Of a stretch of DNA of 64,000 bases, positions 13,701 through 49,206 are shown piece after piece (the first letter of the stretch is position 1; every line of letters begins with the position of its first letter). The stretch comes from Rebecca billardiae RCC1528 (Eukaryota; Protista; Haptophyta). Where the stretch lies: assembly GCA_965240325.2 (NCBI GenBank), contig OZ251239.1:930001-994000 (forward strand), read 5' to 3'. The notes under the pieces were generated by a model that saw nothing but the letters and a program-made list of their open reading frames with translations, was not told the origin of the DNA and did no database searches. The translations under genes were made by a program, and so were the position numbers.

Positions 13701-14285
13701 CGCGGGCCTCGCGCCGCAGCTCAGCCTGCTCGTCGCGCCGCTCGGCGGCGCGGCGGACAGCGCGCTCCTCGACGAGATCGCGGACGTGCAGCACGCGGCG
13801 CGCCGGCGCGCGCTCATGCGCATCGCGCCGCGCGTGCGCGCTCGCGAGATGCCGGCGGCAGCGCTCGCGCGCACGCTGCTGCCGCTCGCGGTGGCGTACG
13901 CGTGCGCGGAGGGCGCGGCGTGGGCGGAGGCGGGCGACGAGGCGGCGCGGCTGCTCGGCGCGATCGCCTCCGCGCTGCCCTGGCGCGCCTACGCCGGCCT
14001 CCTGCGCACCCTCCTCGCCCGCGCCGACGATGAGGCCGTGAGCGCCGCGGTGGAGCGACGGCTCTCTCGCGCGCTCGGAAACGTGATCGCGGAGTTCGCG
14101 GCGCCGCACGCGCGCGCGGCCGCGGAGGGCGAGGGCGGCGCCGAGGCGGAGGAGGGCGGCGCGCGCGGCGGTGCGCAGGAGGAGGAGGCGGAGGAGGACG
14201 AGGAGGAGGAGGAGGAGGGGGGCGCGCCCGCCGACGACGGCGCCGCGCCCGCCGCCGCGCCGCGCGCGGGCGCGCCCGCCGCCGC

Positions 14286-14316
<31 letters not shown>

Positions 14317-29200: not shown

Positions 29201-30902
29201 AAGCCAAATCGCCTAGCGCCGCGAGTGTGTGCGCGTGCTCCGCGCCCAGCGTGCGCTCGCGCGCGCCGAGCACGCGGCGGTGCAGCGCCTCGGCCTCGCC
29301 GAGCTGCCCGCTCTCCGCCAGCACGTTCGCCAGGCTCGCCAGCGCGCTCAGCGTCTCCGCGTGCTCCGCGCCCAGCGTGCGCTCGCGGCCGAGCACGGCG
29401 CGGTCGAACAGCGCCGCCGCCTCGTCAAGCTCGCCGCGGTCGCGGAGAGAGGCGCCGAGCGCGACGACAGAGGCGAGGGTGTCGGCGTGCTCGGGGCCGA
29501 GCGTGCGCTCGCGCGCCTCGAGCGCGCGTCGGTGCAGCGCCGTCGCCTCGACCAGCCGCCCCTTCGCGTGCAGCACCGTCGCGAGCTGCTCGGTCGACGC
29601 GAGCGTGTCAGCGTGCGCGGCACCGAGCGAGGTGCGACGCGCGCCGAGCGCGCGCCGGTGCAGCGTCGCCGCGTCGTTGAGCTGGCCGAGCGCGTGGAGC
29701 ACGTTGGCGAGGCTGGCGAGCGAGCGGAGCGTCACCGGGTGCTCCGCGCCCAGCCTGCGCTCCCGCGCCTCCAGCGCCTCCTGGTGCAGCAGCGCCGATT
29801 CCTCGTATCGGCCCTGCGCGTACAAATTGCATGCCAGCTCGTACTGCAGGTCGGGGCCGGGCGCGGCCGGGCGCGCGCCCGCGACGCAGCGCGCGAGCGC
29901 GGCGGAGAGCGCGCGCGGGACGAAGGGGAGCGAGGCGAGCGTCGCCGCGCCCGCGCCGCGCACGCCGCCGCGCCGCCGCGCCGCGAGCCACGCGATGTGC
30001 CCGCTGAGAAGGGACTCGGCCTCGGCTAGCCTGCCGTTGGCGCGCAGAAGGTTCGCGGCCGCGCACGCGAGCTGCGAGTCGTCCGGCCGGGCGCGGAGGA
30101 GGCGCTCGGCCTCGGAGGCGAGCCACGCGCGCACCGCCGCCTGCGCGCCCTCCTCCACCCGCGCCATGCCGCCGGGCACCGCCGCCTGCGCGTGCAGCGC
30201 GATGCGGGCATGGTCCTCGCTGCGGCTCGCGCGCGCGCGCCGGATCGAGAGAGCGGACACGGCGGCGAGCATCTGCGCGAAGTGGTGCGCGAGCGCGTGG
30301 TCGAAGCGCTCGCGCTCGCGCGGCGGCATGTGCATGCTCACGCCCTTCCCGCGCAGCGCGCACGTGCCCAGCTCGAGCAGGCACCACGCGCGGCTGAGCA
30401 GCACCGGCTGTGACCACGGCCACAGCAGCGCGACCGCGCGCTCCGCCGCGTCGATCGCGGGCGTCAGGCAGGACTCGAGGAAGCCGTCGCGCAGCGGCTC
30501 GGCCCACTGGCTGCTCATCAGCAGGCACGTCCACACGCACTCGTCGTCGCGCACCGCCTCCTCCAGCGCCGCGACCACGTCGCCGAACGCGTGCTGCCAC
30601 GGAAAGAGCGCGAACACAACGCCCGTCCGGCCGACGCGCGAGGCGGGCAGCGTGGCGAAGTACGAGGTGCGGCCGGGTTTGGTCATCGGCTTGACGATCT
30701 CGTGGCACACGTCCGTCACCGTCAGCGCCTCGCCCGCGGGGCGCACCTCGCCGCTCCACGGGCGCACCCACGTGCCCGCGATGCTTTGGCGCGCGGCCGC
30801 CCAGTGCGCGAGCTCGCGAAGCACGTCGATGCGCACGCCGCGGCCGGCGGTGGAGGCGGTGGTGAGCGTGCGCGCGGGCATCTTCGGCGGCGGGCCCGTC
30901 AT
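26238..30902 (-). CDS. TIR/HET-like domain plus ~26 KLC-type 42-aa TPRs, 1554 aa, intronless
   Basis: LTVTDVCHEIVKP and ALLWPWSQPVLLSRAWCLLE match the protein at 1343-3964. Repeats LAxVLHAxGxLxEAxALHRRALxARERTLGAEHxxTL. Confidence 0.87.
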   Translation of the reverse strand: MTGPPPKMPARTLTTASTAGRGVRIDVLRELAHWAAARQSIAGTWVRPWSGEVRPAGEALTVTDVCHEIVKPMTKPGRTSYFATLPASRVGRTGVVFALFPWQHAFGDVVAALEEAVRDDECVWTCLLMSSQWAEPLRDGFLESCLTPAIDAAERAVALLWPWSQPVLLSRAWCLLELGTCALRGKGVSMHMPPRERERFDHALAHHFAQMLAAVSALSIRRARASRSEDHARIALHAQAAVPGGMARVEEGAQAAVRAWLASEAERLLRARPDDSQLACAAANLLRANGRLAEAESLLSGHIAWLAARRRGGVRGAGAATLASLPFVPRALSAALARCVAGARPAAPGPDLQYELACNLYAQGRYEESALLHQEALEARERRLGAEHPVTLRSLASLANVLHALGQLNDAATLHRRALGARRTSLGAAHADTLASTEQLATVLHAKGRLVEATALHRRALEARERTLGPEHADTLASVVALGASLRDRGELDEAAALFDRAVLGRERTLGAEHAETLSALASLANVLAESGQLGEAEALHRRVLGARERTLGAEHAHTLAALGDLASVLRLSGQLESAVALLRRALETRERTLGTSHPDTLESLSSLAAALHAHGALGEAEELLRRARACRERALGREHTRTLETVAALASVLQARGALEEAGALSRHVMLARERTLGAEHPLTLKAAREVARALGTAGELAKAEALRRRIVRVLERSCGPEHPSTLVALNELGAVLHAKGDLDGAEGLHSLALEAAEDTVGAEHALTLSSVESIAAVQQSRGELDEAAANLRKVAAARERTLGEEHAETRRSLSSFAHVLHALGELEEAEALLRRALGASERAAGATAAETLGLTHALACVLAARGEGEAAAAMQRRVLEAEERTLGPDHPSTLAAASDLAHILHAAGRLGDAAALHRRALDGRGKALGAEHADTVHSVNGLAAVLYAQGQLGEAEALYRRALGARERHLGPSHKRTISSVNNLAAALFAGGDLDEAAALQRRSLEAAHSSLGLEHAETIASLSSLAAVLHAQGRLDEASALQRRALSASERALGAEHPETLAACTDLASVLHAMGQLEEAEALHRRALGASERTLGAEHADTLGTLSSLACVLDAQGRSDEAEPLYTSALERQTRTLGAEHALTLRTASNFAAMLHSVGRLRESAALHRRTLEARQRTLGPEHADTLRSLSALALATHAAGEVANGEAMLTRALDAQARTLGEAHAETVGTMGALAAVLAANGRLEQAEATYRRALRASEAARGADHADTLAIACALAELLEPQDGRAAEAVAVRRRVLEARERALGAEEAEALDALSALAAALHAHAELDEAEALHARALSARERILGPDHAETLASVDDLAAVLHARGRLDEAAALRLRALRAREEALGDEHPHTLSSASNLAHAHHAAGRLGDAATLHRRALDGRGKALGESDPQTIASMRGLADALRELGDGEEAEALYRRANDAEASALEGAEGAELSPRTQQRPSARPSPAAHSRHRLHGGSLPPPLPASLSLPDIAAPTWQPITPRLRAQPGLPPARAAALSPT

Positions 30903-31028
30903 CGCCGCCCCGGGCCGCGTGGACAGGGCTCACGAGTACTGGTAGTAGTACGTATCTGCCCCGGCCCCTTCCAGACGACGGCGAGAAGCCCGAGGAGGTG
31001 GGATCCGCGGCGGATCGCGTTGAATCTA

Positions 31029-31518
31029 GGGAAAACCCCGGAAGTCCGACGAGGACCGACCGAGCAACCAGAACTCCGACAAACCTCCGCATCTCAGCAC
31101 GGCGATTTCCGGACTGGCACCCCCGCCAGTTTTCCGACGGCCAGAAGCTTCGGGAGCGAGCAAATGGCGCCGCTCGCCCGCAACGCGGAAGATACCGCTC
31201 GCGGCGAACCGGCGCGAACGCCCGCCTTGTATTCGGGCGGAGTACCCTAATGAGCGGGGGTGGGCACTTTCGTATTGCGCGCAGCCTGACGCCCACCCGC
31301 GACGAAACGACGCCGTCGACTCCTCCCGCCCGGACCGCCGCCGGAACGTTGCTCGTCAATTAGTTAGAGAAATGCGACGCCGGGGGGCGCGCCGCAAAAC
31401 TTGCTCCCGAGCTCGCCACGAGGGACGATCGATGCCTCGCACGACGTTAAGGGGGTACGCCTGCCACGCGCGCGGGCGTCGTGCGCGCGCCGCGTGGTCG
31501 CGCGCGGCGCATCGCGCG
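31029..31518 (+). repeat. Left TIR of the MULE
   Basis: Reverse complement of 48305-48794, near-identical except for a 13-nt block (31426-31438) and a few substitutions. Confidence 0.93.
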
Positions 31519-34500
31519 CGCGTGTGTCTTCGTTCGCGCGCGCGGCGTGCGCTCGCGCATGTCGTCACGCCGTGCGTTCTGCGTCGTTGCGCGGCGTCGT
31601 GCCCGCGTGCCGCGCGCAGGCCGCCGCCGCCTGCGGGGACGACTCCGACTGCGACGAGCTTCGCGAACGGGGCTGCTGTGGACGTGGTGTACGAGCAGGG
31701 TGCACCGGCAGTCCGTGCTGTGGTCGCGGCGCTTGGGGTCGGCGCACACGGGCGAGTGCAGACGTACGTCCTCCGGGCTGCCGAGGGAGTGTCTGCTCAT
31801 GCGTGGGCTGCGGTCCCTGGCGACACCGTCGGTGCGTCCGCGGATGGAACAGTCGAGGGCGCAGGCTCGTTGAAGAGGGTGCCAGCGGCGCACGTGCGTG
31901 CGCCGCCCGCCGGCGAGCAGTGCGCCGAGCAGGGGCAGGGCGCCGAGCAGGGCGCCGAGCAGGGCGCCCTGCTCGGCGCCCTGCTCGGCGCCGAGCCGGG
32001 CGCCGAGCAGGGCAAGCAGGCCGCCGAGCAGGGCGCCGAGCCGGGCGCCGAGCCGGGCGCCGAGCAGGGCGCCGAGCAGGGCGCCCAGCCGGGCGCCGGG
32101 CAGGGCGCCGGGCAGGGCAAGCAGGCCGCCGAGCAGGGCGCCGAGCCGGGCGCCGAGCAGGGCGCCGAGCAGGGCAAGCAGGGCGCCCAGCCGGGCGCCG
32201 GGCCGGGCGCCGAGCCGGGCGCCGAGCAGGGCAAGCAGGCCGCCGAGCAGGGCGCCGAGCCGGGCGCCGAGCAGGGCGCCGAGCAGGGCGCCCAGCCGGG
32301 CGCCGGGCAGGGCGCCGGGCCGGGCGCCGGGCCGGGCGCCGAGCAGGGCAAGCAGGGCGCCGAGCAGGGCGCCGAGCAGGGCGCCGAGCAGGGCGCCCAG
32401 CCGGGCGCCGGGCATGGCAAGCAGGCCGCCGAGCAGGGCACCGAGCCGGGCGCCGAGCAGGGCGCCGAGCAGGGCGCCCAGCCGGGCGCCGAGCAGGGCG
32501 CCGAGCAGGGCGCCGACGGCCGGCCGGCCCGCCACGGCAGCACGCGCGTGGGCGGCGGCAGCTACGCCGCCCAGGGCATCCAGCAGGAGGCTGCGGGGCA
32601 GCGCGGCGCGCAGGGGGCGGCTCACCACAACGGGCGCGGCGGCGTGCGGACGCGGGCCATGCGCCGCCAGCCGCCACTTGCGCCACCCGCCGAAGCGCTG
32701 CCCGGCGTCACCTCGGCGCCGGCGCCGCCGTCGGCGCCGACGGCGGTCGCAGGCGTCACGGCGGCGCCGGCGGCGCCGCCTGCGGCCGCCGGCGGCCCCG
32801 CGACAAGCGACGAACGCGCCGAGCCGCCACGCGCACCCGTCGCAACGCTGGCGCCGGCGCCGCCGCCGCCGCCGGCGCCGACGGCGGTCGCCGGCGTCAC
32901 GGCGGCGCCGGCGGCGCCGCCTTCGGCCGCCGGCGGCCCCGCGACAAGCGACGAACGCGCCGAGCCGCCACGCGCACCCGTCGAAACGCTGGCGGGTGCC
33001 ACCGGCGTCACCGCGGCGGCGCCGGCGCCGCCGCCTGCGGCCGCCGGCGGCCCCGCGACGCGCGCCGAACGCGCCGAGCCGCCACGCGCACCCGCCGAGG
33101 CGCCGGCGGCTGCCACCGGCGTCACCGCGGCGGCGCCGGCGCCGCCGGCGCCGGCTGCGGCCGCCGACGGCCCCGCGGGCGTCAACTCAGATGACGCCGG
33201 TGGTGCTGCCTCGGGCGAGGTGGCACGGGCGGCGACGGCGTCGACCGCGACGCGCGCCGAACGCGCCGAGCCGCCACGCGCACCCGCCGAGGCGCGGGCG
33301 GCTGCCACCGGCGTCACCGCGGCGGCGCCGGCGCCGCCGGCGCCGGCTGCGGCCGCCGACGGCCCCGCGGGCGTCAACTCAGATGACTCCGGTGGTGCTG
33401 CCTCGGGCGAGGTGGCACGGGCGGCGACGGCGTCGATGGGTGGAGCGGCGGCTGGCGCAGCGGGGTCGCACTCCCATGCACCACAGCAGGCGCCCGCCGC
33501 CGCGCAACCCGGCGGTGGCGGCCACGCTGACGACGGCGGCGGCGTCTACGGCAGCGGCGACGGCGGCTCACGCGAGCTGTTCGCGATGAGCGATGTCTTG
33601 CAGCACGTGGATCATTTCTTCAGCGGCATCTACGGGAAACGCCGGAGGTTCGGCGGAGACACGCCCGCCGCGCCGGCGCAGGCGCACGCGCACGTGCTGG
33701 TGCGCCCCAGCGCGGTGGCGGATGCGGACGCGCGGACGACGAAGCACGGGCCGCAACCGAACAACGGCCGATTGGTGCCGGCCATCCTCAGGTTCAACCG
33801 CGCGTTCGCGTCACGGCATCTCGGCGGCGGCGGCGGCACGGTCCGCGTGGTGAACGTGGTGTGCGATGCCACGAACAACAAGCACTTCGGCGTGCTCACG
33901 GATGCCGACGCTGTGCGCGAGCTGTGCGCCTCGGGCGCCTTGTACACGCGCAGCGAGGTGGACGATGCGGTGCGCGAGTTCTACGCCGGCGCCGCCGCGA
34001 GCGTCGGCGGCTCTGTCTCTGAGCTCGCCCTGCGCGCAGCAGGCGAGCACTTCGGTGTGCACGGCCCGTTGCCCTACGTCCTCGACGCGGACGTGCGAGT
34101 CGCCTTAGCGGACGCTGAGGCCGACGACGATGGCGTCGCAGGCGGCGACGCGCCCTGGGTTCACCGGGCGCTTGCGTTGCCCTCGATGCGGCGCTCGGGA
34201 CAGGCGGTGTTCGGCCTCCCCGCCGTGGTTGCACAGGCGCCCTCCTGGTGCGCGCTTGTGCCCACGCCGCTGCGGGCGCCCGCTGAGCAGGGGACGTCGC
34301 CTTTGCTGCACGCCGCCGTGGCCGTGGTGGACTACCGGTCCGTGGACACCGACGACACCGACGAGTCGGAGCCCGTCGTCGGCGCGCACGCGTACGCCAT
34401 CCGCTTCGAGAAGGGCTGGCGCCTCCTCACCTTCGCCACGCGGCCGCCCAGTGGTGCGGCGGGCGCGATGACGGCTGCGACGTGCACGGACCTCACGGTC

Positions 34501-37071
34501 GACGCCTTCGCCGCCGCCGTCAGCCGGCGTGAGGTTGCTGCGTGCGAGCTGCAGTCAGCGCCGCCGCGGGCCATTGCGCCCCCCGTCCAGCACGCCGCCC
34601 CCGCGCTCCACGACTCGCCGCCCAGCCCGGACGAGACGGACGCGTTGCCGCCCCGCCCGCGCCGGGACGTGGTCCCGACGTCCACGGACGTGCTCATGGG
34701 CGCCTCCGCGGTGTGCAGCGCGCTCGGCATCGGGCCATGCCATTGGGCGCCCGATGGCGACCCGCCCGGGCTCATGACGAACGCCGCGGCCATCGCGGAG
34801 GCGGCGCTCACGTACGTGCAGTCGAACTACGACGTGATTGGGGGCACGGCGGCGTCGGCGGACCTGCTGCACACGCTCCACCAGATCATGGTCGCCGGCC
34901 GCCCGCAGCGCTCGTTTGACAGGCCTCTCCCCCGGCCGGGCGGTGGGACGCGCGTGCGCGTCGCAGGCGTCGTCGGCGAGCTGCCCGTCCATGAACAAGA
35001 GCTGATGCTCGCCTCGAAGCACACGTGCGTCGCGGCGGCCATCGCGTGCGCCTCGGCGCTCGTGCTGCGCGTCAAGGCGGCACACCTGCGATACGACGCC
35101 CTCGCCGACGTCAGCGTGGGCGATGGTGCGTCCTTCGAGGCGGCGGACTACCTCACCAAGGTGCGCATCGTCAGCGCACGGCTCGTCGCGCCCGAGCGGA
35201 AGAAGCGGCTCACCTTCGAGCTCCTCGCCGTCTCCGAGGATAACGCCGGTGCTTACGACCGCGTGCTCAACGCCGACACGAGCTCGCGGGCACTCCACCG
35301 GGACGAGGTGCTCGAGTTCACCTACGTGCCTTCGAAGACGCGCTCGTGGAAGTCGACGGAGGCGCTGTCAACGCACAGCCGCGCGGCGGCCGGCGACGAC
35401 GCCGACGCCGGCAACTTCGGCACGCTGTTCTTCGTCCCGCACATGCGCGACCCCGTGAAGGCAGCCGCCCTGGCGCGCCCGCCGCCTGCCGGGACGCCAC
35501 CTGCCGCGCCGCCCGTGGGTGCGATTGTGGACTTTCGCCCCTTGTGCATCAGCGTGTGGGCTGACATCGTCCCGTTCTGCCAGGATCGGCTCTGGACGCA
35601 CCCGGCGGACCCAGTCACCGGCAAAAGCAGCGGCGTGGACGCGCCGAAGATGTACGCCGCCGCGCTCCACAGGCGCGCGCCCTCGCTGGCGCGGCACGTA
35701 CAGGCGGCGCCAGCGCGCAAGCGTCGCCTGAACGAACGCGGCGCCGACGCGGGCGGCGCGGGCGGCGCCGCCGGTGGGCGTGTGGTGGCGCGCCGGCCGG
35801 TCGGCGACCCGGGCCGCGTCGCCGTCACACGGCCATCCGCCGTCGCGCGCGCACCCGGGCCACCCGAACAGGCGACGCGCATGTGCACCGAGCTCGCTGC
35901 GGCCCACGCCCAGCTCGCTGAGATGGTGCACGGCATCCCCAACGCAATGGCACAAGCGATCGGACAACTCGCTGCGAACGACGCCAAGCGCCAGAAGGAC
36001 TACGAGGCCTGGCGCGCGGCGGACGACGAGCGGCGCCGGCAGGAGCGCGCGGCGGACGAGGCCTGGCGCCAGCAGGAGCGCGCGGAGGCGGCGCGCCGAC
36101 GCGACGAGGATCGCGCGGCCGCAATGAAACGTGACGAGATCGCGAGCGCGATGGTGGCGTCTATGCAGGCGTTGACGCAGTTCATGATGGACCGCAGCGC
36201 AGGTGGCGCACAGCCCGGCCCGCACGCGTCGGCGCACGCGGCGTGCGTCCAGCTGCCAACAGGCGAAGCACCGCACGGCGCGCACGCCCCGGCTGCGGGC
36301 CCGTCGGTGAGCGCTGCGTCCGCTGCGCCCACGTCGCGCGCACCCACGGCACGGCGTGGCGCGCCGCCGCCGGTCGCATTCGGCCAGCGCGCGCGGCGCC
36401 GAGTGCCGCCCCCTGACTCGCGTGTGCCCGCCAGGCCGCTGCACTGTCGCTCCGTGCGCCGGCCGCGCAGGCCGACGAAGCCCCCGCGGGCCAGCCCCCG
36501 CCGGCCGCGCAGTAGACGCCGACCCACAAGGGCGCGTCCTGACGTGCCCACGCGCCGCCCACAGGTGCGCGCACACACCACATCGGGCGGCGCCAGCCGT
36601 GCGCACGCCGAGCGGCGTGTACGCGCAGCCCTGGCTCAGTCGCGCCCGACCGCCCCCGTGCGCGCGCGCGCGTCGCGGTGGCGTGCACAGGCTGCGCGCC
36701 ACCCGGGGCGGCCACGCGGGTGGCCGCCACCGCTGGCAGCATCTGGCCACGAGCTCGGCACCCGGGGTGCCGGCGGAGTGGCTCGTCGGAATCGCCGTGG
36801 CCTGAGCCCGGTTCTCCGAGCACACGGCCACAGGCACCCCCCCGGCCAGCGCCTCTGCGCCACTCGCAGTGACGGCGCCACAAGGGCCTACGGCGGGGCC
36901 CGCCGAGAAGGTCTTAGCGCAGGTCTTAGCGGGATGCAAGCAGCGCCACGCGCGACAACACTGATACACGCCGCCGGGGGCCCACACTGTGCCGGCCCGT
37001 GCTATGTCGTCGTCAGCTCGGACGCAGGCCGGCCGGCCGGTGCCGTGAGTCGGCGCCTGTCGTTCTGTTAG
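31372..37071 (+). CDS. MULE accessory gene (mudrB-position ORF) of unknown function; true start and 3' exon structure uncertain
   Basis: 1899-codon ORF starting inside the left TIR. (GAEQ)n and Ala/Pro repeats, globular coding-like segments at 33580-35700 and a coiled coil at ~35880-36190. The first ~80 and last ~230 codons look intron-like. Confidence 0.65.
31915..32515 (+). repeat. 12-bp coding minisatellite (gagcagggcgcc/gagccgggcgcc)n, ~50 units
   Basis: Seen directly; encodes [15 protein letters not shown] units. Followed by ~126-bp and ~192-bp tandem duplications at 32700-33435. Confidence 0.9.
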
Positions 37072-40000
37072 CTGGCACCTGGCGTGCTCAGGCGGCGTGG
37101 TGCGCACTCAACGTACCCCTGCAAGGGTGATGTAGCTCGCATGAAGTGCGCCAGACGCCCCTCGTTGTTGTCGCGCGCCGAACGCGCCTCCAGGGGCGCC
37201 GTCGCCGACACCACCGCGCCGAAGTGGCAACGGCCGTCGTACACCACGGCCATCCACGTCGTGCCCAACTGCGTGACGTCCAGACGCTGCAAGGCGCGCC
37301 GCGTGCGCTCGTCACGCAGGCGCAGGTGCGCATGCGTGCTCACGGCGACGCTGCCCTTGCGCCCGCCGTCGTCAGTCCGCCGCCAGCGAAGGCCCGGCCG
37401 CGTCTGCACGGGGTACAACCAGACGTTGTCGGTGAACGCGCGCCACGCCGCCTCCTCCGGCGTAGCCCCGCCGCGCAGCTCAAGGACCACCAGCGGCAGG
37501 CCCGTGGCGCGCGCCGTCGCGACGTGCGAGCCCCACGCCGACCACGCACCAGCGCGCGCCGCATGCGCGCCAGCGCCGTCGCCCGTGTACCGGGCGCCGC
37601 GCGCGTACGCGCGCGCCGCTGCTCCCAGCGTCCGCACGCCTCCAGTATGTCGCAGTGGCAGTGGCAGCACCTCCTGCCAGTCCTCGTCCTGCACTTCGAG
37701 TCCTTGGCCGGTGCGGGCCCGGGGGATGGATGCTGGCTTGACGCCAAGCATGCCGAGCGCGCTTGCCGCCGACGCCGTGGCCGACGCCGTGCCGAGCGTC
37801 TCGCCCGGTCCGTGCTCGTCCTCCCACGACGCGATGTACGAGCACACGCCGTCGCGCAGCGTCTGCGCGCGCGCGTTGGCGGCGGGCAGGTCGGCCCGCA
37901 CGCCACGCGTGTCGTGCGCGAGCCACGCGTGAAAGTAGCAGTCGCCATCGCCGGGAACGTCCTGCACGCTCGTGCCGCCGCCGAAGAGCTCGCGGATGGC
38001 CGCGGCGACGTTGCCGTCGCCATCCACGCCGCCGGGTGCTCCGGTCTGTGCACCAGCCCGCGCCTCGGGCGGCAACGCCGGCGGCAGGGGCAGCACGGGG
38101 AAGCCCAGGCGCTCGAGCAGGACCGCGGCGTCGTCCACCGGCGCGTGCACGTGTGCGGCGGCCGCCGGAGCCACCGCAGCCGGCGCAGCCCCGTGCCCGG
38201 CGGGCGCCGGCGCCGCCGCACCCGCGTCCACGGTGGCGTCCGTCGCCGCCGCGGCGCGCGGCGCGGCTGCGCCGCGTGGCGCGGCATCACCCGCCGTCAC
38301 GTCAGCGCGGCATCGCTCCGCCGTCACGTCAGCGGCGGTCTCGCCCAAGGCCAGGCGCAGCCCCAAGCCCACGTCGCACCGCCATGCCCCGTCGGAGCCG
38401 TCGAGAGGGACCACCTCGGTGCCGAACGCGCTCGGGTCCAGCGCATCCACCTCGCACCCGCGCCGCCTGGACGCCAGCCTCACGTGCGCGTCCGCAGCCG
38501 GCTGGAACGCACTCCAGCGCGACGCCGGCAACACCCCGTGCGCGCGCGGGGTGGCCTGCGGCGCAACCACTGCGTAGAACTGCCGGCGAGGACACACGTT
38601 GCGCACGATGGCCACCCAGCCGGTGCCCATCGCCCCGACGTCGAGCGTGCGCAGGACGCGTGCGTGCGTCTCGCGTCCCAGGCTCAGGCGCGCTTCGCAC
38701 AGCGGACGTGCGTCCGCGTGCGCGGCGCCTGCGTCGGGCGTGTCGGCGCGCCGGCGCTTCGCGCCGGCGCCCCCGCGAGCGCGTGGCGCCGCCGGCGCCG
38801 GCGGCACGCGCACTGCCGTCGGAGGATACCACCGCACGTGCTCACGCATGGCGACGCCGTGCACGTCGCGAGCTCGGCGTGCGTAGGCCATGTCGAAGAC
38901 GAGGAGGTGCACGCCGGCGGCGCGAGCGACTGCCGCGTACCACTCAGGGCCATCGCACGTGTTGCCCGGGCTGCTGACGTACCCGTCGCACGTGTACTCC
39001 GCCGCTCGCACTGCCAGCGTCACTGCGTCGTCCAGATCGCGCACGCCCTGGCCGGGGGTGTGCCACGACGACGAGTCGTCGGGGGCCACCATGCGCAGAG
39101 CCCGCAAACGCGCCTGCCCAGCTTCGTCGCCACCTGCGCTCTCCGGGGGAAGTGCGCGCACGTCAGCGCCGCACAAGCCGATGAAGCGCGCCTGCGCTCG
39201 CAGGTCCTCTGCCGACTCGGCCGGGCCCAGCGCGCCACCCCAGCCGACGGAGTGCTCGGTGGGCGTGGCATGCGCGTGCGCGGCCAGCCACGACGCGGCC
39301 GCCGCGCGCAGGCGCCGCGCGCAGCACGCCCACCACAGGGCCTCAAGCGTGCTGGGCGGACGCGCCCGCGCGTGCGCGTGCGCGAGCACCGCGTGCAGCA
39401 CGTCGTCACCGTCGGCTGGCACGGGCAACGGCTGTGCGGCGCCCGCGCCCCAGAGGTCGTCGAGCACTGCCTGGGCGCAGCAGAGCCGTAATCGGGCGAA
39501 TTCGGCGTCGTGGTCGTCTGCGCCGGCGGCGGCGTCGGCGGCGTGGAACAGGCGCACCGGCGCGTGGCGGTCATCGCCCGCGGCGCGCGCTCCAGCGTCG
39601 CGCACCGGCAGACCAGTGCGCGCCAAGTGGGCGACCGCGTCGTCCGCGGTGGCGACGGCTGTGTCGTCCGCGGCACCAGACGTGCCACGCGCCGTCCCCA
39701 GCAGGTCGGCGCCTGCGCGCGTTGGGCCCGGCGTCGGCACCGACCGCGCCGCCGACGATGGCCCCGCCGTGGACGCGCGGGCGCCCGCCGCCTGGCGCGA
39801 AGCCGGCGGCAGGCGCCCATCCGCGGCCGCACCGCCCGCGTCGTCGGCGGCGGCCGCAGTCCGAGGGCGCTTGGGCGCGCACGGCGCAGACGCGGCCCCC
39901 GCGCCCGCGCGGGAGGTGCCAGCCGCGGCGCCCGCCTGGCCTGCGGCGCCTGCGCCCGCGCCGCCGCCGCCAGCCAGGACGTCCGCCAGGCCCGCCGCCG

Positions 40001-43000
40001 CCGCCGCGACGTCGTGTGCGCCTGCGTGCGCCCACACGTGGGAGGCCGCGTTCGGAGCGGCGCCGCCCGAGCCCCTCGCGCCGCCACTGCCCTCGGCGGG
40101 CACGGCGGGCGACGCGTGCGCGCGCGCCAGCTCGGCGGGGGCGGCGGCGGCGCGCGCAAACTGTGCCAGCACCTTGCCCGTCGTCGCGCTGGACGCGCCG
40201 AATGCGTCACCGGCCGTCTCGCTGAGCGTGGGCCACGGTGCTGACAGGCCGCGACTGCACATGAACATGGCTGCCCTGCCCCGACCGATGCCAGGTATGC
40301 GCCGCAACGCCGCGAGCACTGCGGCGCTGTCGTCAGCGAGGCGCGCGTACGCCGACTCGGACTCCGCCGCCTCCGCCGGTGGCTCTGCCGCGCCCGCGCG
40401 CGCCCGAGGGACTCGCGCACCCGGTGGCGGTGGCGCGTGGGCGCCGGGCCACGGGGGGCGGAAGGGATGCTCAGTCGCCGCCAGCGGTACTGTGTCGCCC
40501 GTGGCCGGCAGCGGCTCCGCGGCGTGCGCGCGCGCGCGCGCGGCGGGCGTCGTGCCGGCGTCCGCGCCACTGCGCGGGCCCGTCGTGCCCTCAGGCGGTG
40601 CGGCCGGCCGCTGCGTGGCGGCGTTTGGCATCGGTGCCGTCGCGAAGCCCATGCGTACGCCGGTGCCGCCAAGTGCCTGCGAGGCGATCGCGCGCGCGCA
40701 GTGCCGGCGCGGGCCGCCGCGCGCGCCCGCGCCCGCCGCGGCGGCGCCGTCGCGCGTCTGGGCGGCCGCCGGCTGCGCGCGCCCGGGCGCGGGCGCCGCC
40801 GCGCCGCGGCCCCCGCGGCCGCCTGCGCGGCCCCCGCGCGCGCCTGCGGTGCGCGCGGGGTCGCCGCGCGCGGCCCCACCGCCGTGCTGTCCGCGCATAC
40901 GGTGGTATGGCACGTCCTCCGGCCTCGCGCCGCGCGGCCCGTCGGGCGCCGCCGCCTCGCCCGCCGCGGCTGCGCGCGCTTCGCGCAGGCGCTTCCACGC
41001 CCCCGCGACGAGCAGGAAGTAGCAGCACGTGCACATGTACAGCCCGCTGTCCAGCGCGCCGAGGTGCCACACATACTTGCACTGCGCGGGCGAGTGGATG
41101 AAGCAGGCGCAGCCCTGGCACGCCAGTCGGGGGTCGATCGGCGGCGAGTCCGCCGGCCACGCCGCGCTGAGGTCCGCGGCCTCGGGGTCGAAACACGCGC
41201 AGCAGCGCAGTTGCGCGGCGGCGGTCGTGCCGGCCGTGTACGTGGCAAAGTGGCGACGTCGCTGGTTCGCAACCACACCCTCGCGGAGCGGGCCGGCCAC
41301 GCGCACGAGCACGTTAGTGTCGTCGAGCACGTGCGTGTGCGCGATGCCGTACAGGTGCTCCGGCAGCCCCTCGAGCACACGCGCGAGCTCGTCGCGGTGC
41401 GCTTCGCGCACGCGCCGGGCGAAGTCGCCGTCCGGGGCTTGCTCCCTCAAGGGGCGCACGTACGACGCCGCGGATTTGCCCAACTGCACGCGCGGCGCGC
41501 GCGCGCGCGGTGCGCGCGGGTGGCGCGCCCCGGCGCGGCCCTCCCAGAACGCCAGCCGTCGCGCCGAGGACGCGGGCCTGCCCACGCGCGCGGGCACCGC
41601 TGGCATGGCCACGTACTTTTCGAGCAGGGCGCGCTTGGCGAGAGCGGGCAGCAGCAGAGCCGCAATGGCGTCCTCCAGGCGCTGGGGCGGTGTGATGACG
41701 TCGAGCTTGGTGATGGCCACGACGCGCCCGAGCGTGTCCACCCGGGTGTCGTGTGCGTCGCGCTCGACCCGAAGGCCCACCTGCGCGAACCACGTCTCGC
41801 AGCGCAGGTCCTGGGGCAAGCACGTGCCCATGGCACGGCCGACGGAGGTCGCCACGCGGCAGAAGTGCATGCACGGCAGGCGCTTGCGGCGCAGCAACGC
41901 GCAGCACCGGAACTCGTCGAGGTACACGTGGCGCGGCGCCGAGCCGTCCGTGGTGTTGAGCATGCGCAGGGCACCTGCGTGCGGCCCGTCGAGGACACGG
42001 TGCACTTCCACCTGAGAGAGCGTGCGCGCCGTGCTCACCTGCTGGCGCACGTATTCCAGGTGCCGTGGCGGCAACCCGTGCACCTCATCATCGGCGTCGG
42101 GCTTCAGGGCGTGGCGCACGGCGACGCTGCGGTGCGTCGCGTAGAGGCGAAAGAGGTTGTCGTGCAGGTCGAGCAGCATCCACACCGGGCCCTGCGCCTT
42201 GCGCACCGGCAGCAGCCAGTGCATGAAGGACTCCGCCGGCGCGGACGTCACGTAGCCGCGCAGGGACACCGGCGCGAAGCACGGGAAGAGCTCCTCGCGG
42301 GGGATGACGTCGAGGATGCGCTTGGCCGACTCTGGCATCTCCACCCAGGCGGCCTCCCACACCTCCTCGGTCAACGCGTCCACGCACGCGTCGAACACGC
42401 GCAGGATGGTGGGCACCTCGTTCGCCGAGTGTGCGTAGCCCGTGATGAAGGTCTGGCGCTTGTGGAACGTGCACAGGAAGAGGTGCCTGCGCGGGCACAG
42501 CAGCTTCCACGCGCCGCGCAGGCCCTTCTGGCCGTCCGAGATGGTGACGCCGTTGGGGTCGTCCCACACAGCCGCCCCGCCGAGGTGCTGCATGAGGTAT
42601 CCGACGTGCGCGCACCACGAGTCCAGGCACTCCACGTCGACGATGTACGACACGCACAAGACGAACAGCTGCCGGTTGGCGTTCACGGCCAGCGTGACGA
42701 AGAGCATGCCTGCGTCGCGCGCGTGCGTGCGCGCGGGCAGGTCAGACGGGCGGGCGCTGAGGCGGCACGGACGCACGCGGCGTCGCGAGGGCGTGCCCGG
42801 GTGCGGCGGGCGCGCGCACCCGCGCGCTTCGCGCCACCGCTGGCGGGGCGGTGCAGGAAGCACGCGTCGCTGAACGCGGCCGTGTTGCCCTTCGCGTGAA
42901 AGTGCTCGCGGTAAAGCGCCTTGGCCTGCTTGGGCACGTAGTGGAAGCCACCCACTGCCTTCTTGCCGCGCACGTCAGCCAGCGCCTTCTGCACCTCCGC

Positions 43001-46000
43001 CGCGTCGGGGTTGAAGGCCGCGCGCTGCGCGCCCGCCGGCAGCCCCTGCTGCACCTCGTCGTGCACGCGGCCGAACATGGCCAGCAGCGCGTCCTCGACC
43101 GAGTTCTCGTGGAAGATGATGGGCGCGACCTCGTTGCCCTCCTGCGACAGCGACGCGCACACTGCCACGAGGTCGCGCGACATGGCCGTGTCGTCCCCGT
43201 AGATCTCGGCGCGCGCTTCTTTGTGCGCTCGCGCGATGAGCGATTCACCCATGGGGAGCTCTGCGTCCAGCTGGCGCGCGACCTCTCGTGCTTGCTGCGG
43301 GCCGTAGCACAGCTGCGCGTGCGTGGTCCCGCGCCGGGCCAAGCGCGCCTTCCAGTCCTCGACGATCGCCCGCCCGAGCTCGTGTTGGGAGTACGGCGTC
43401 GTGCGCACGCCCGGCTGGTTGGTCGGGCGCGGCAGCGAGCCGATGGGGTGTTCCTCGGACCCCTTGCCCATGCGCAGGTTGCGGCACATGGAGCCGTGCG
43501 CGACCGAGCGTTGCACGGCCCACGGCGGCGCGCCAAACGTGTCCACGTACTTCGACGGGCCCACCACCACCACGGACGGGCACCCGGGCGTGGGGCATCC
43601 GATCGTCAGCTTGGCGCGGTCGACGCGCCGCGTCGGCGGCATGGCCCCCCGGTGCAGCGCGCACTCCGAGGCGTGCGTGAGCGCGTCGGCGAGGCGCGGG
43701 TACACCTGGCGCACCATCGGGGGCTCGAGCAGGGTGGCGTCCGCCTTCACCTGGGAGTACGGGCGCGGCGCCCGCAAGCCCATTTTCCTCCACAGTGCCA
43801 GGGGCCGGAGCTCGAGGCGGTGCGCTGCCGCCGACGTGCTCGCCGAGGTGCTCGACGGCGCGGAGTAGCGGAAGTACCCGGCGTCACCGCCGTGGTGCAG
43901 CGACTCCGGCGCAACAAGCCGGGCGCCGGCCTGGCCGGCGCGGGGCTCGGCGGGACCGGTGGAGGGCGGCTGCGCGCGAGCGACGATGGGTGGACACGGC
44001 ATGAGGGCAGCCAGCGGGTCGCGCGCGCGAGCGGCGTCGCTGTCGGCGGACTCGTCCGCCTGCAGTGCCGCCTGCGCCGCGCGCGCGCGGGCGTCCGCGC
44101 AGTCGTCGTCCGCGATGCCCTCCTCCCAGTCGCGCACGTCGATGGCGGCACTGGCGGGATCGGCGTCCGTGACGAGCGGCTCGCCGCGGGCGTCGGACTC
44201 GCCGACGCGCATCGTCGGCCAGTCCGCGCTCAGGGCGAACAGCGGCGCGTTGCCGCGGGCGGCCGCCGTCGTGTGCGTCCTATGGCCCACGGACGCGTCG
44301 ACGAGGGGCACTCCACCGCGCGCCCATGCGGGCGCCGACTTCTCCGTCGCCAACGCGTCGGCAAGGTGGCCACCGAGGTGGGCACGCTGGCCGGCGTGCA
44401 GGGCCAGGGCGAGGTCCCCGCCGGACAAGAGGCCACCTGCGTGCGGCAGCGCAGGGAGGGCCCTCAGCCGCGCGTCGTCGTCGTCATTGCCGCCGTCGCC
44501 ACCGGAGGCGCCGCGCGGCTGCGGCGGCGCGCGCGAGGCGCAGCCGGGCGGCTGCGCGATCACCGCGCGCGCGCTGCTGCTGTCGAGGGGCGGCCCCGCC
44601 GGGTGGAGTGGCGGGCGCGCCGTCGCGGCGCACACAGCAGCGCCGGGCACCGTCACCGCGACGCAGGGCACGGCGTCGCCCGCAGCGCAGGGTGCGCCCG
44701 GCGCTGGCGTTGCCACGCGAGCGGGCGAAGAGTGCCCATCGCCAGGCCGCGGCGACGCGGGCTCGTGCGCGCCCGGCGCGTCCGAGCTCGAGCTTTGGCG
44801 GGCGCCGGTGTGCCGCAGCGGGGCGGACGCTGCGTCGGGGCGACGCACGGCCGTGGGCGCGCGCGGCCCGACAGCCGGGTCGTCAACGCCATCGGCGCGT
44901 GGGGGCCGCGCGCCCTCGTCAAAGGGGGCGCCCACGTGCGCGCCCGTGCCGTGCGCGGCCGCGGCGGTGGGCGCGCGCCCACCGCCGTCGGCGTGAGGCG
45001 CGGGGTGGCCGCCCGCAAGCCCCACGACGTGGGGCACGGCAGGCGCCGCTGCGCGCTCATGTGCGAGCTGCGCGCCGTCGGCAGCGCACACGGGCAGCGC
45101 CAGCTGCAGCGCCGACTGCGCCCAGGCCCGCTGCTCGTGGTCCGACGGCGCCTGCTGGCCGTGCGCCGCGGTCGGCAGGTCGACCACCAGGCGGGAGACG
45201 TACTCGTGGTGCGCAGGCGAGCCGAGCCGGAAGCGGGCGTCAGCGCCAGCGCGCGTGGGCTCAGCCCCCCAGCGCAGCCTGGTCTCAAACGAGTGCTGGA
45301 GCCCGCGCTCGAGGGCGGGCACGAGCCGATACGGCGTGGGAGGCGGGTCGGAGCGCGCCGCGCACGGCGTGGCGGCGGGGCGAGGCGCGCTCGGCGGCGG
45401 CGTGAACGAAGCGCGGAATGTGTCCGCGAGGCCCCGCCCCCCGAATGAGAACACAGCCTTCAGGACGAGCGCGTCCGCCGCACCCTGACGCGTAGGCCTC
45501 TTGCGCGAGGACGACGGCACGGACCCCGAGGACGCGGCGCGCGCACTGGGGGCCGAGCGGTGATGCCACATGGCGGGGAAGATGTGCACTGCACCTGCGC
45601 TTTCCTGCAGGGCAACGTCGCCGTGCAGCGGCACGGCGTCGGCGCGCGCACCGGGGGGGCGCGCGCCGACCGTCTGCAGCGGGAAGGGATTGGTGGGCAC
45701 ACTTTGCGGCAAGTGCAAGAGGACCACTGCCGTCCACAGATGGTCCTCGTCGGTCGTGCCGTCGACGTGCCACCCGTACGTCGTGACGTCGCCGTCGTCG
45801 CACGTGCCGCGGCCCCCGTCGGGCGGACGCATCGGCCGCCCGAAGACATGCCAGGCCGTGAGGTCGAGCGCGTCGAGGCCGCGGACACCGTCAGAGGCGT
45901 CGCCGCGGAACAACGAGCTCACGACGCCCTTCAGCGCCGCCACCACGCGCTCAAAGGCGCGGCACCCCAGCACCGAGCGCGCAGAGGAGCCGTGGTCGCC

Positions 46001-47974
46001 CACCCCCCAGCGCCGCTGCGCGGCCGCCTCGCCGCCCGCGTCCGCGGACTGGTACGCGTGCACCGTGCGCAGGAGGCCGCCACCCTCATCCAGCAAGGGC
46101 ATGGACGCATCGCCGTCCCCGCCGAGGCCTGCGTGCTGCAGCACGTACTCGCGCAACGGGCCAACCAGCACGCCCATGTCCATGTCCAAACGCTGCGGTG
46201 CCGCAGCGGCGGCACCAAACGCGGCCTGCAGCGCGCGCCCAACCGCGGTGTTATGCGCGAGCATGTCGTCGAGGCTGGGCGCGGGCGCCGCCGCAGGCGT
46301 CGGCGCCAGCGCGTCGCCCAGCGGCGGCTCGCCTGCAGGCGGCAGCGCGCGCGGCACCACCACGGCGGAGGCAGGGCGCATCGCGCCCGACGCCGCGCTC
46401 GTCACCTCGTCGCGCCACGGCGCAGCGGCGCCCACGACAGCGTGCGCACCGCACAGCGTCAGCACCAGCGTCACTGGCGGCTGCGAGACGGCCGCGCCGG
46501 CCACGAGGGCCTGCGCGAAGGTGGCGTCGAGCAAGGGGTGCAGACGCGCGCCCTCGCCGACGTGCACCAGCGCGGGCGCGAGCGGGATGACCACTGCCCA
46601 CACGGTGCGCTCGGCGATGGTGGAGGCGGCCCGCAGCAACGGCCGCGCCAGCCACCCTTCGCGCAGCGAGCCGTCCTCGCACGCGGCCACAAAGGCCGCA
46701 AGACCGGCGTGGCCGTCGGCGACCACGGCAGCACGCAGCCTGACGGCGGCTGCGCGCACGGCGGCGTCACGTCCAGCGGCGGCGCCGGACGTGGCAGCGC
46801 GCGGCGCTCCATCTGCCGCCACCCCTTCGCCGGCCCCCACGACGGCCTGCGAGACGGCGCCGAGCCACGCCAAGCGGGCGCTCTCGAGTTCCGCACGCAG
46901 CTGCTGGTCGCGCCAGCGTGCCTGCTCAGCCGACGCGGGAACGAACGCGCGCGGCTGCGCCGGCACGGGCGCGCAGAGCGCGCGTACGGCAGCGTACGCC
47001 TGCGTGCGCAGCTCCGCCGCTCGCGCACGCAGCGCGTCCGCGCAGAGGCTGCTGCGGCCTGCTGGCCACGACGCCACGCGCTCGAAGGCGACGAACAGAG
47101 GCTCGGACTGGCCAGCGTCCGCGCCGAAGACGGCGCGCGCGTAGTACATCACCGCCTCGGACGGGCATGACAGCGGCGGGCACGGGGGGGGCGCGCCCGT
47201 CCAAGCGCCCGACGGCGCCGCCGCCGCCGCCGTCGTCGCCGGGAGCACGTCGTCGACGCCTCCGCCAGTCCCAGCACCTGGGCGGGCATCCGGACGGGGG
47301 GCGCACAACGCCGCCAGAGCCAGCTTCGTCCGGAACGGAGCGGCGGCCCAGGCCGCACGCACTGCCCACGCGCATGCGCCCTGCGCGTGCTCAGCGGCGC
47401 GTGCGTGCTGCCCTGGGGTCGGCGCCGAGGACGACGGCGACAGCGACTCCGCGCCACCCGAGCGGCGCGCGTGGGACGTGCCTGCGGGCGGCGGCGCCGG
47501 TTTCCCTCCGAGCGCCGCTGCGGACGCCGTCAGTCGCGCCGTCTCCGCGAAACTGCCCTCCTCCGCCAGAGCCCCGTCGGCGGAAGCACCACAGGCAGCG
47601 CGCACGGCGATCTGCGCGACGGCCCTGAACCAAAGGGCCGCCGCGCACACGCGCGCCACCGAGTCCGCGCGCTCACGCAGCGCGTCCGGGTGCGAAGCCA
47701 ACAACTCCGCACACTCCACCACAGTGAGCAGCGCGTCGGCGCCGCTGCCACCCCATACGCGCGGCACTGTGACCTGCGCGGCGGCGGCGCCAAGGCCCAC
47801 GTCGGTGCTGTGGACCACGCCGAGGGTGCACAGCACCAGACCAAAGGTGAACGTCCACGGGGCTGCTGCCGAGGAGAACTGCAGCGTGCACAACGCGTCG
47901 TCAGCCGCTGCGATCACCGCGTCCACGAGCAGCAGGTCGTCCTGACTGCTGGGGCCGGCGGACACATGCCGCAT
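37068..47974 (-). CDS. Multidomain MULE transposase, ~3598 aa if only intron 42819-42710 is spliced: 2OG-Fe(II) oxygenase, MuDR Zn finger, DDE, SWIM, PHD, HhH, degenerate OTU, OTU
   Basis: A 110-nt GTGCGC..CGCAG intron joins the two ORFs in frame: FSDACFL..AG|MLFVTLAVNAN..ISDGQKGL..CTFH..TSAPAESF. Also CPTPGC..HGSMC, RCC..LPCMH, CCAC..CQGCACFIH..C..CTCC, IPGIG, VPGDGDCYF..CHF and WHVD..HHRS. Confidence 0.85.
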
Positions 47975-48304
47975 GCCCGCCTGCGCGGTACGTGCCAGCA
48001 CGTGCGGCGGAGAGGCAAACGCAGGCGCGCGCGAGCACACACACGGGGCACATCGTCAGACAGGGGACGGGGGCGCATGGGAGTGGTGCGGTGTGCGCGC
48101 GCGCGGCGGCGCACGCCACCAACATCGCTGCCGACCACACACACCCGCCCCGGCCCACCGCGACCTCGCACCATTCACGAATCACGAGTGCGACTTGCCT
48201 GCTCGTCGCGGCCGGCGACCGTCGACGCCTCAGACCGACTCGGATGCGAGAAGGGGGAACTCCTGCGAGGGGAGGCCGCAGGGAACAAGAACGGTCGGTG
48301 CGTG

Positions 48305-48794
48305 TGCGCGATGCGCCGCGCGCGACCGCGCGGCGCGCGCACGACGCCCGCGCGCGTGGAAGGCGTACCCCCTTAACGTCGTGCTCACGCCCAGCCCTCC
48401 CTCGTGGCGAGCTCGGGAGCAAGTTTTGCGGCGCGCCCCCCGGCGTCGCATTTCTCTAACTAATTGACGAGCAACGTTCCGGCGGCGGTCCGGGCGGGAG
48501 GAGTCGACGGCGTCGTTTCGTCGCGGGTGGGCGTCAGGCTGCGCGCAATACGAAAGTGCCCACCCCCGCTCATTAGGGTACTCCGCCCGAATACAAGGCG
48601 GGCGTTCGCGCCGGTTCGCCGCGAGCGGTATCTTCCGCGTTGCGGGCGAGCGGCGCCATTTGCTCGCTCCCGAAGCTTCTGGCCGTCGGAAAACTGGCGG
48701 GGGTGCCAGTCCGGAAATCGCCGTGCTGAGATGCGGAGGTTTGTCGGAGTTCTGGTTGCTCGGTCGGTCCTCGTCGGACTTCCGGAGGATTCCC
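48305..48794 (-). repeat. Right TIR of the MULE
   Basis: Reverse complement of 31029-31518. Confidence 0.93.
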
Positions 48795-49206
48795 TTGAAT
48801 CTATCCGCGCTTTTCGTGGACGCGGTTCGCCTCGCACACCTCGCGGGAACCGTTCAGGCTCACTTTTGTGGTTGCGCCCCACTCATGAGTGAGTAAGACG
48901 TGTTCCTCAGAGGCTTCTCATGATCCACTTAGATCACTTTAGATGCAGTTCGTCAGCTATCGGGTACAAGTGTTATTACCTACCGTATGAATTGAGCTGC
49001 TGGGCGAGACTTTGGCGTTACTTACATGTCGAGTCAAGATGCAACTTGGAGACTGCATGCATGCGCGGGTGATCCCTAGACTGATAGTGACGGCTTTGTA
49101 ACGACGCAGGACTTTGCTCCTAGAGGACGCACGACCGGTCCAAGGGCGGGAAATTTTCGGAGGCATGTTCCGTTGACCGGGCCCACCGGAGCGCTCGCGG
49201 CGATCA

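Follow-up and report, generated by a model that had tools for sequence, protein, structure and literature searches.

The window analysed here, a 64,000-nt stretch of contig OZ251239.1 from the haptophyte Rebecca billardiae RCC1528, contains at positions 31029–48794 a 17.8-kb element, both ends of which were read directly in the sequence. Its long open reading frames (ORFs) comprise one on the plus strand (31372–37071) and two on the minus strand (42683–48040 and 37068–42863). We consider it likely that the element is a Mutator-superfamily cut-and-paste transposon (a Mutator-like element, MULE) that is intact in structure and probably autonomous, and that it encodes a giant multidomain transposase whose additional modules include a 2-oxoglutarate-Fe(II) (2OG-Fe(II)) oxygenase domain and a pair of OTU domains. 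It extends a known type of transposon in an unusual way and does not represent a new type. The ends of the element and its target site are as follows:

31020..31028, no strand: left target site duplication (TSD), TTGAATCTA; read directly and the same as 48795–48803
31029..31522, plus strand: left terminal inverted repeat (TIR), ~489–494 bp; inverted-repeat search and end alignment
48301..48794, minus strand: right TIR; inverted-repeat search and end alignment
48795..48803, no strand: right TSD, TTGAATCTA; read directly

The element starts at 31029 with GGGAAAACCCCGGAAG, and the inverted-repeat search recovered two pairs of arms, 31022–31425 with 48398–48801 (404 nt, 99%) and 31439–31522 with 48301–48384 (84 nt, 95%). 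When the two ends were aligned, the TIRs extended over ~489 bp and were identical at positions 10–397, the only mismatches up to position 397 being at tip positions 6, 7, and 9; beyond this point came a 13-nt unlike block and then ~80 nt with two mismatches. The near-identical TIRs of ~490 bp described in an earlier note on this DNA were therefore borne out, as was its exact 9-bp TSD, which lies directly outside both ends. The TSDs of Mutator elements are 8–11 bp long (typically 9 bp) and their TIRs often measure 100–500 bp, and the element falls within both ranges. A 32-nt probe from the TIR tip occurred at two places in the window, which were the two element ends only, and an Rfam scan of the element found nothing. 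The element is recently inserted and structurally intact, a reading of its youth that derives from the perfect TSD and the intact frames and not from TIR identity. The identity of the TIRs was rejected as an age clock, because the ends of DNA transposons need not match at insertion. The tip mismatches lie at 31034–31037 and 48786–48789 (GGGAAAACCCC versus GGGAATCCTCC), and they may reflect a deliberate asymmetry between the ends where the transposase cleaves.

The transposase gene and its predicted intron

The GC content within the window ranged from 62% to 84%. Because long ORFs arise by chance on both strands at such a composition, ORF length alone is weak evidence of coding. The two minus-strand frames comprise 1,785 and 1,931 codons with zero stops, where ~19 stops per frame are expected by chance (a stop frequency of ~0.011 per codon), and the GC content at the third codon position (GC3, 0.8–0.98) exceeded GC1, which in turn exceeded GC2, in every 300-nt bin of both frames. 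The features of the predicted transposase gene, listed from its N-terminal to its C-terminal end, are:

42820..47974, minus strand: transposase exon 1, with an unknown N-terminal region of ~700 aa, the 2OG domain, a long linker, the Zn finger, and the first Asp of the DDE triad
45431..45838, minus strand: 2OG-Fe(II)-like domain (PF13640-like); HxD at 45761–45769, distal His (MWHH) at 45560–45571, candidate 2OG-binding Lys at 45458–45460
43484..43597, minus strand: Cys...His/Cys Zn-finger-like stretch, CPTPGC...HGSMC; motif only, no profile match
42222..42874, minus strand: MULE DDE core, split by the intron; first Asp (D1) at 42866–42868, second Asp (D2) at 42534–42536, His of CxxH at D2+24, Glu at 42231–42233; PF10551
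42710..42819, minus strand: predicted intron of 110 nt, GT..AG, from a reading of the sequence; stop at 42683 if retained
37068..42709, minus strand: transposase exon 2, 1,879 codons and stop, with the second Asp and the Glu of the DDE triad, SWIM-like and PHD-like motifs, HhH, pseudo-OTU, and OTU
41859..41906, minus strand: SWIM-like motif CC-x9-C-x-H; motif only, not the canonical CxC
41016..41204, minus strand: PHD/RING-like finger C-x2-C-x24-C-x2-C-x4-H-x4-C-x15-C-x2-C; motif only
40278..40298, minus strand: HhH-like motif IPGIGRG; motif, the ~90 aa around it resembling the N-terminus of P0001 (E 2e-4)
38541..39488, minus strand: pseudo-OTU (OTU1), with Asp for Cys in PADGDD and Gln for His in QFYAVV; BLASTP with P0001 (E 9e-10) and alignment
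37146..38018, minus strand: OTU-like cysteine protease (OTU2), DVPGDGDC and CHFGAVV; P0001 (E 3e-21), PDB profile, Foldseek, and atlas

The candidate intron, 42819–42710 on the minus strand, starts with GTGCGC and ends with CGCAG, and its removal joins the two frames into one continuous frame, yielding a predicted junction of ...AAFSDACFLHRPASGGAKRA-G-MLFVTLAVNANRQLFVLCVSYIVDVE... (in short form, ...FSDACFLHRPASGGAKRA-G-MLFVTLAV...) and rebuilding a MULE-like passage from the first Asp to the next strand. It would lie between the first and second catalytic Asp residues of the DDE triad. With the intron retained, the reading frame would end at 42683, ahead of the second Asp, so splicing would be needed for activity. 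The Pfam MULE match begins at the second residue of exon 2, which corresponds to profile position 17; this is the start predicted if exon 1 encodes positions 1–16, the first Asp among them. Joined in this way, the reading stretches comprise 1,740 and 1,879 stop-free codons, and the predicted spliced product from the first ATG (47974) is ~3,598 aa long. The earlier note had proposed this intron at the same position, where a length of 110 nt and GT..AG ends were read, but "in-frame" was the wrong word for it, since the intron shifts the frame and its removal restores it. The single public read run containing element sequence, a run of unknown type, yielded scattered low-depth contigs with zero depth at 42700–42899, none of them crossing the intron.

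The only predicted intron of the gene sits inside the DDE core, where its retention would truncate the transposase before the second Asp. In P elements, splicing serves as a regulatory switch, and splicing of the DDE-core intron could, by analogy, play the same part here.

The same element might produce no single giant protein if internal promoters, internal starts, or alternative splicing divided the long frame into separate products. In favour of such a division, long low-complexity linkers rich in Ala, Gly, Pro, and Arg separate the modules, and the one relative of the C-terminal part (P0001, described below) was called as a stand-alone HhH-OTU protein of 585 aa. However, no in-frame stop interrupts the 1,740 and 1,879 codons, and the coding composition continues through the linkers; moreover, the call of P0001 may be truncated, given that the frame upstream of it is open to the end of its contig and is still similar to the transposase. 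We consider separate products unlikely, and a single protein of ~3,600 aa is what we infer from the open frames.

Modules of the predicted transposase

The catalytic core was recognized by its motifs and by a weak profile match. In Pfam searches with whole ORFs and with nine shorter pieces (24,736 models), MULE (PF10551) was the only plausible family, with 16.4 bits (E 0.012) across profile positions 17–95 of 99, below the cut-off of 27.6 bits. The DDE residues were assigned to FSDACF (D1), TISDGQ (D2), and PAESF (E), with spacings of 74 residues between D1 and D2 and 101 between D2 and E, and a CxxH motif, CTFH, places its His at D2+24, giving the combination of DDE and CxxH that characterizes MULEs. 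In Muta1, in which the catalytic residues have been mutated experimentally, these are D214, D283, H307 (= D2+24), and E419 (PMC5225508). The MULE core proposed in the earlier note thus gained tool support from the sub-threshold PF10551 match and from a spacing like that of Muta1. A phmmer search of the PDB with the DDE piece returned noise only. Because the DDE motifs occur together with a 9-bp TSD and long TIRs, we regard membership of the Mutator superfamily as secure. The residue 18 positions before the catalytic Glu is Phe (42285–42287); at this distance (E-18), Muta1 carries Trp401, a residue that matters for function, and the correspondence is one of spacing only.

The smaller modules around the core are motif assignments. 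MULE transposases carry an N-terminal WRKY-GCM1/FLYWCH-type Zn finger and a C-terminal SWIM motif; for the two candidates here, the evidence is the Cys/His spacing, and neither had a profile match. The PHD-like piece had no Pfam match at E values up to 10, and the protein atlas recognized it poorly and indicated no family; a C4HC3 finger recognized by a profile was not obtained, and the pattern is approximate, with H-x4-C in place of H-x2-C. The MuDR Zn finger, SWIM, and PHD of the earlier note therefore persist as Cys/His spacing but not as profile-supported domains, and its description of the PHD as a histone reader had neither profile nor embedding support. The HhH call fared somewhat better: the motif is present and is conserved in one distant relative, P0001, with no further tool support.

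The C-terminal OTU pair was examined with an exhaustive HMMER search, in which the last 1,200 aa were compared with 1.84 billion representative sequences. The only relative was P0001, a protein of 585 aa (E 7e-14). In BLASTP comparisons, it matched OTU2 with E 3e-21 (32% identity), OTU1 with E 9e-10, and the HhH region with E 2e-4, and the order of the matching parts agrees with that in the transposase. P0001 has a single HhH-like stretch and a single OTU, in which both Cys and His are present. Upstream of the called Met, its frame runs on without a stop as far as the 5' end of the contig, and this part, too, resembles the transposase; the identity to the transposase is 32–36%. The contig (L001 1–3076; Logan, sample ERR14847150) is 3 kb long with 73% GC. 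P0001 could come from a host gene, or it could form the last part of a larger giant transposase related to this one.

In a three-way alignment of OTU1, OTU2, and P0001, the invariant positions were VP-DGD-..HA.LAH and a C-terminal GT.W.A.V....F.AVV. The Cys (DGDC) and His (HF.AVV) are kept in OTU2 and P0001, and OTU1 has Asp and Gln there, lacking the catalytic Cys and His and thus constituting a pseudo-enzyme. When a profile of the three sequences was searched against 177,635 PDB sequences, the top three hits were OTU domains (E 0.01–0.057), namely two viral L-protein OTUs (E 0.01) and EschOTU (E 0.057), and the OTU2 motifs DVPGDGDCYFHA and CHFGAVV aligned to the Cys motif of these viral OTUs and EschOTU, providing the D-G-x-C and His expected of the family. 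An AlphaFold model of OTU2 from the three-sequence alignment had a predicted local distance difference test score (pLDDT) of 42, and most of its top 50 Foldseek hits were OTUs, with E values of about 1. An embedding search of the protein atlas with OTU2 gave 0.93 to OTU clusters, the best of them mostly haptophyte. The curated Pfam OTU model (PF02338) did not match any of the transposase pieces, phmmer with OTU2 against the PDB gave a 16-residue motif match only, and a word-indexed homologue search and a viral scan with the OTU profile retrieved no relatives. We accept an active-looking OTU preceded by a pseudo-OTU as the reading of these sequences, and the degenerate and intact OTUs of the earlier note gained tool support from the P0001 alignment, the PDB profile search, and the atlas.

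The N-terminal half carries a module that is probably a prolyl-4-hydroxylase-like 2OG-Fe(II) domain, as judged by sequence comparison. An atlas embedding search provided a lead only: 76 of the 100 clusters nearest to the 2OG piece were PF13640, with a top score of 0.93. A reference profile was built from 11 annotated cyanophage and rhizobiophage oxygenases, which were 22–47% identical to the first reference and were all (11 of 11) verified as PF13640. The hhalign comparison of 45386–46198 (minus strand) with this profile gave P 0.0012, placing WHVDG on the invariant H.D and IFPAMWH-H on LIFP..W.YPH, so that the iron triad of PF13640 (invariant H.D and H) is matched by WHVDG and MWHH, in the right profile columns and in the right order. 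With all filters off, HMMER scored the 135-aa core at 13.4 bits (single-sequence E 4e-6). This score was not reached by any of 2,000 shuffles, all of which stayed at or below 4.1 bits, and the reversed sequence scored -2.3. Sliding windows over both giant proteins exceeded 2 bits only where they overlapped the 2OG region, and among 642 six-frame pieces of the 64-kb window, two pieces from the 2OG region scored 9.8 bits and the next best 0.9. The match to PF13640 was therefore significant with the custom profile; the curated Pfam model gave no match.

These controls bear on a second alternative, in which the 2OG-like stretch is a chance or decayed resemblance and only the fusion of transposase and OTU is real. 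The 2OG piece had no match in Pfam, NCBIfam, PHROG, or the PDB (phmmer noise only), the word-based homologue search, the metagenome scan, and the viral scan were blank, tblastn of the core against phages gave no match, the hhalign probability was only 19%, and the AlphaFold model, built from a single sequence and not used for a fold search, was useless (pLDDT 32). Nonetheless, the comparison had been set beforehand and returned P 0.0012 (hhalign) and E 4e-6 (HMMER, one sequence), neither the shuffles nor the rest of the window produced a comparable score, both iron-binding motifs fell on the correct columns in the correct order, and the atlas independently indicated PF13640. A chance resemblance is accordingly improbable in our judgement. 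The 2OG-Fe(II) dioxygenase of the earlier note gained tool support from the custom profile and its controls, but the label of oxidative eraser did not hold: the match is to prolyl-4-hydroxylase-like PF13640, and no Pfam model, those of the TET/JBP, JmjC, and AlkB families among them, matched the 2OG region. PF13640 enzymes are mainly protein hydroxylases, and the assignment to this family is the reason that the label is disfavoured.

Second gene, insertion context, and possible mode of action

The remaining long frame of the element is the convergent ORF:

31372..37071, plus strand: convergent second ORF, 1,899 codons; no match in Pfam, NCBIfam, or PDB

This ORF begins inside the left TIR, and its composition is coding-like only at ~31780–32600 and ~33430–36130; its first ~100 and last ~300 codons have a non-coding-like composition. 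The long plus-strand ORF was rejected as fully coding on the basis of its codon composition. Of the two uninterrupted convergent ORFs in the earlier note, the minus-strand frames were thus coding-like throughout, but the plus-strand ORF was so only in parts. Mini-satellites occupy its frame at 31914–33436, just inside the end of the element 3' of the transposase, and consist of a 12-nt unit repeated 52 times (31914–32516, GAEQ-type repeats) and Ala/Pro-rich repeats of 114–192 nt. Although a convergent ORF is present, as in MuDR, searches of Pfam, NCBIfam, and the PDB (phmmer noise only) found no similarity, to mudrB or otherwise. Between the coding-like ends of the convergent genes lie ~940 nt (36130–37068) that are open, non-coding in composition, and Arg/Pro-rich in translation; this stretch may be a 3' untranslated region or a disordered tail.

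To the left of the element lies a TPR_10/TPR_12-repeat gene of the NPHP3/kinesin-light-chain type (26238–30902, minus strand, 1,554 aa). The insertion is ~126 bp upstream of its ATG, a typical landing place for a MULE, and may influence the promoter of the TPR gene. Farther away, a single ORF of 3,536 codons at 7909–18519 (plus strand) is a homologue of UTP20, a component of the small-subunit processome, with matches to Pfam UTP20_N, UTP20, and UTP20_C, and its presence identifies the genome as that of a eukaryote; the ORF sits in DNA of 81–84% GC. Host genes in this genome can therefore be giant, intron-poor, and extremely GC-rich, as in this case (3,536 aa).

The TIRs, TSD, long frames, and MULE core together support the earlier description of an intact, apparently autonomous Mutator-like element. 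Several points weigh against the fuller reading of a giant transposase with an oxygenase and OTU pair. None of the domains reaches the curated cut-off of a Pfam model, and a word-indexed homologue search and a metagenome scan with the DDE piece retrieved no relatives of the core. The AlphaFold models, with pLDDT values of 42 and 32, have too little confidence to show a fold; the intron and the single transcript are predictions from the sequence; the 2OG signal comes mostly from one stretch of 27 residues (IFPxxW..H); the candidate 2OG-binding Lys (LVLKAVFSF) follows a low-complexity insertion of ~30 aa and is not aligned; and the functions of the accessory domains are entirely inferred. The 2OG domain and the OTU pair are supported by sequence statistics, not by structure or function. 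Passive capture of host gene pieces without a role in the life cycle, in the manner of Pack-MULEs, would fit the known capture of host fragments by MULEs (PMC6431247), but it is very unlikely, given that the modules are in frame with the transposase, that their catalytic residues (OTU2 Cys/His and 2OG HxD...H) and coding composition are kept, and that the HhH-OTU order is kept in a relative only 32–36% identical.

In the reading of an autonomous MULE with a giant transposase, the transposase would bind the ~490-bp TIRs. In MuDR, the promoters of both inward-facing genes also lie in the terminal repeats, and by comparison the TIRs of this element would drive both of its genes. The transposase gene would consist of two exons, and the 110-nt intron in the catalytic core would have to be removed to give a product of ~3,600 aa in the order of N-terminus of unknown character, 2OG domain (HxD...H), Zn-finger-like stretch, DDE with SWIM-like and Cys-rich fingers, HhH, dead OTU, and live OTU. 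The Zn-finger-like stretch would be a DNA-binding part, and the DDE site would cut and rejoin DNA with a 9-bp stagger; the ends and the TSD are seen directly, and the catalysis is presumed. The live OTU may be a hydrolase of ubiquitin or a ubiquitin-like protein, which might shield the transposase complex from ubiquitin-dependent removal or might cut the giant polyprotein, and the dead copy may have a binding role. For the oxygenase, hydroxylation of a protein is more plausible than demethylation of DNA or histones. The convergent second gene occupies the position of mudrB. An anti-silencing or chromatin-remodelling role is a conjecture. A bolder version, in which the protein is a polyprotein with its own counter-defence, its Fe/2OG hydroxylase and pseudo-OTU/OTU acting on chromatin or ubiquitin at the transposition site and the splicing of the DDE core acting as an on/off switch, seems to us decidedly doubtful. 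If it were true, the element would combine a transposase and a host-manipulation enzyme in one self-contained protein, a type undescribed for cut-and-paste elements.

Provided that the fusion exists and is functional, this transposase would exceed in size all Mutator transposases described and, within the literature searched, would be the first to contain a 2OG-Fe(II) oxygenase in frame. The host-manipulating cargo of transposons (VANC, SET, TET/JBP, Ulp1, and OTU) would then include a further class of enzyme, in a genome of algal type that is poorly studied and extremely rich in GC. The fusion would also offer a compact test case for whether transposon OTUs are deubiquitinases or self-processing proteases, and a test of whether an intron in the catalytic core regulates activity.

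Comparison with known transposons

The finding leaves the element a MULE, with an architecture that is partly published. As in maize MuDR, Aedes Muta1, and other MULEs, the TSD is 9 bp, the TIRs are several hundred base pairs long, the CxxH lies 24 residues after D2, two genes converge, and the insertion is near the 5' end of a host gene. Unlike MuDR and Muta1, the element is ~3 times larger, its transposase frame encodes ~3,600 aa versus roughly 500–900, the second gene has no similarity to mudrB, and an intron splits the catalytic core; its sequence is so isolated that the Pfam MULE match is sub-threshold and relatives of the core were not retrieved.

The closest published counterpart of the C-terminal part is in Medicago truncatula, where a MULE transposase has a C-terminal OTU protease and polyprotein processing has been proposed (Babu, Iyer, Balaji and Aravind 2006, PMC1702500). 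There, a papain-like protease of the OTU superfamily is C-terminal to a WRKY-GCM1/MULE/SWIM transposase, and the element shares with it the placing of an OTU-like module C-terminal to a MULE core. The element differs, by description, in having tandem OTUs, the first of them without Cys and His, in the HhH that precedes them, and in its host, which is protist-like and GC-rich rather than a plant. MULE transposases with a C-terminal PHD finger have been described in Ciona and C. elegans (PMC1702500), and Rehavkus combines a 9-bp TSD, TIRs of up to 400 bp, a PHD finger, and a mini-satellite near its 3' end (PMC6446971). The present element resembles Rehavkus in its 9-bp TSD, its TIRs, the finger after the core, and the mini-satellite inside the end 3' of the transposase (here, 12 nt × 52, 31914–32516). 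In contrast to Rehavkus, the PHD of this element is motif-only and its mini-satellite lies inside the frame of a second ORF, whereas Rehavkus has one ORF and is known only from arthropods and annelids.

The architecture, which the earlier note did not recall having been described, is therefore new only in part: MULE-OTU and MULE-PHD fusions have been published (PMC1702500, PMC6446971), and only its size, its two OTUs in tandem, and the 2OG domain in its frame look new. In a literature search of incomplete coverage, with Repbase and Dfam outside it, no description of a MULE transposase that includes a 2OG domain in its reading frame came to light. In fungi, TET/JBP genes ride EnSpm, Harbinger, hAT, IS3EU, and KDZ transposons as separate genes, MuDR not being listed among them (Kojima 2025, PMC12730594). 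In both cases, an enzyme of the 2OG-Fe(II) superfamily travels with a cut-and-paste element, but here the domain is PF13640-like and is in frame with a MULE transposase. The same theme of counter-silencing cargo is found in other transposons with epigenetic enzymes, such as VANC in VANDAL elements and the SET genes in Phytophthora MuDR. OTU-like proteases also occur in the proteins of Helentron/Helitron2 and in Ginger1 transposases (PMC6431247, PMC2836005). The likeness is that of an OTU cysteine protease within a giant transposon protein, and the difference lies in the machinery that carries it, which is rolling-circle Rep/Hel or of the integrase-like DDE class in those elements and a MULE transposase in this one.

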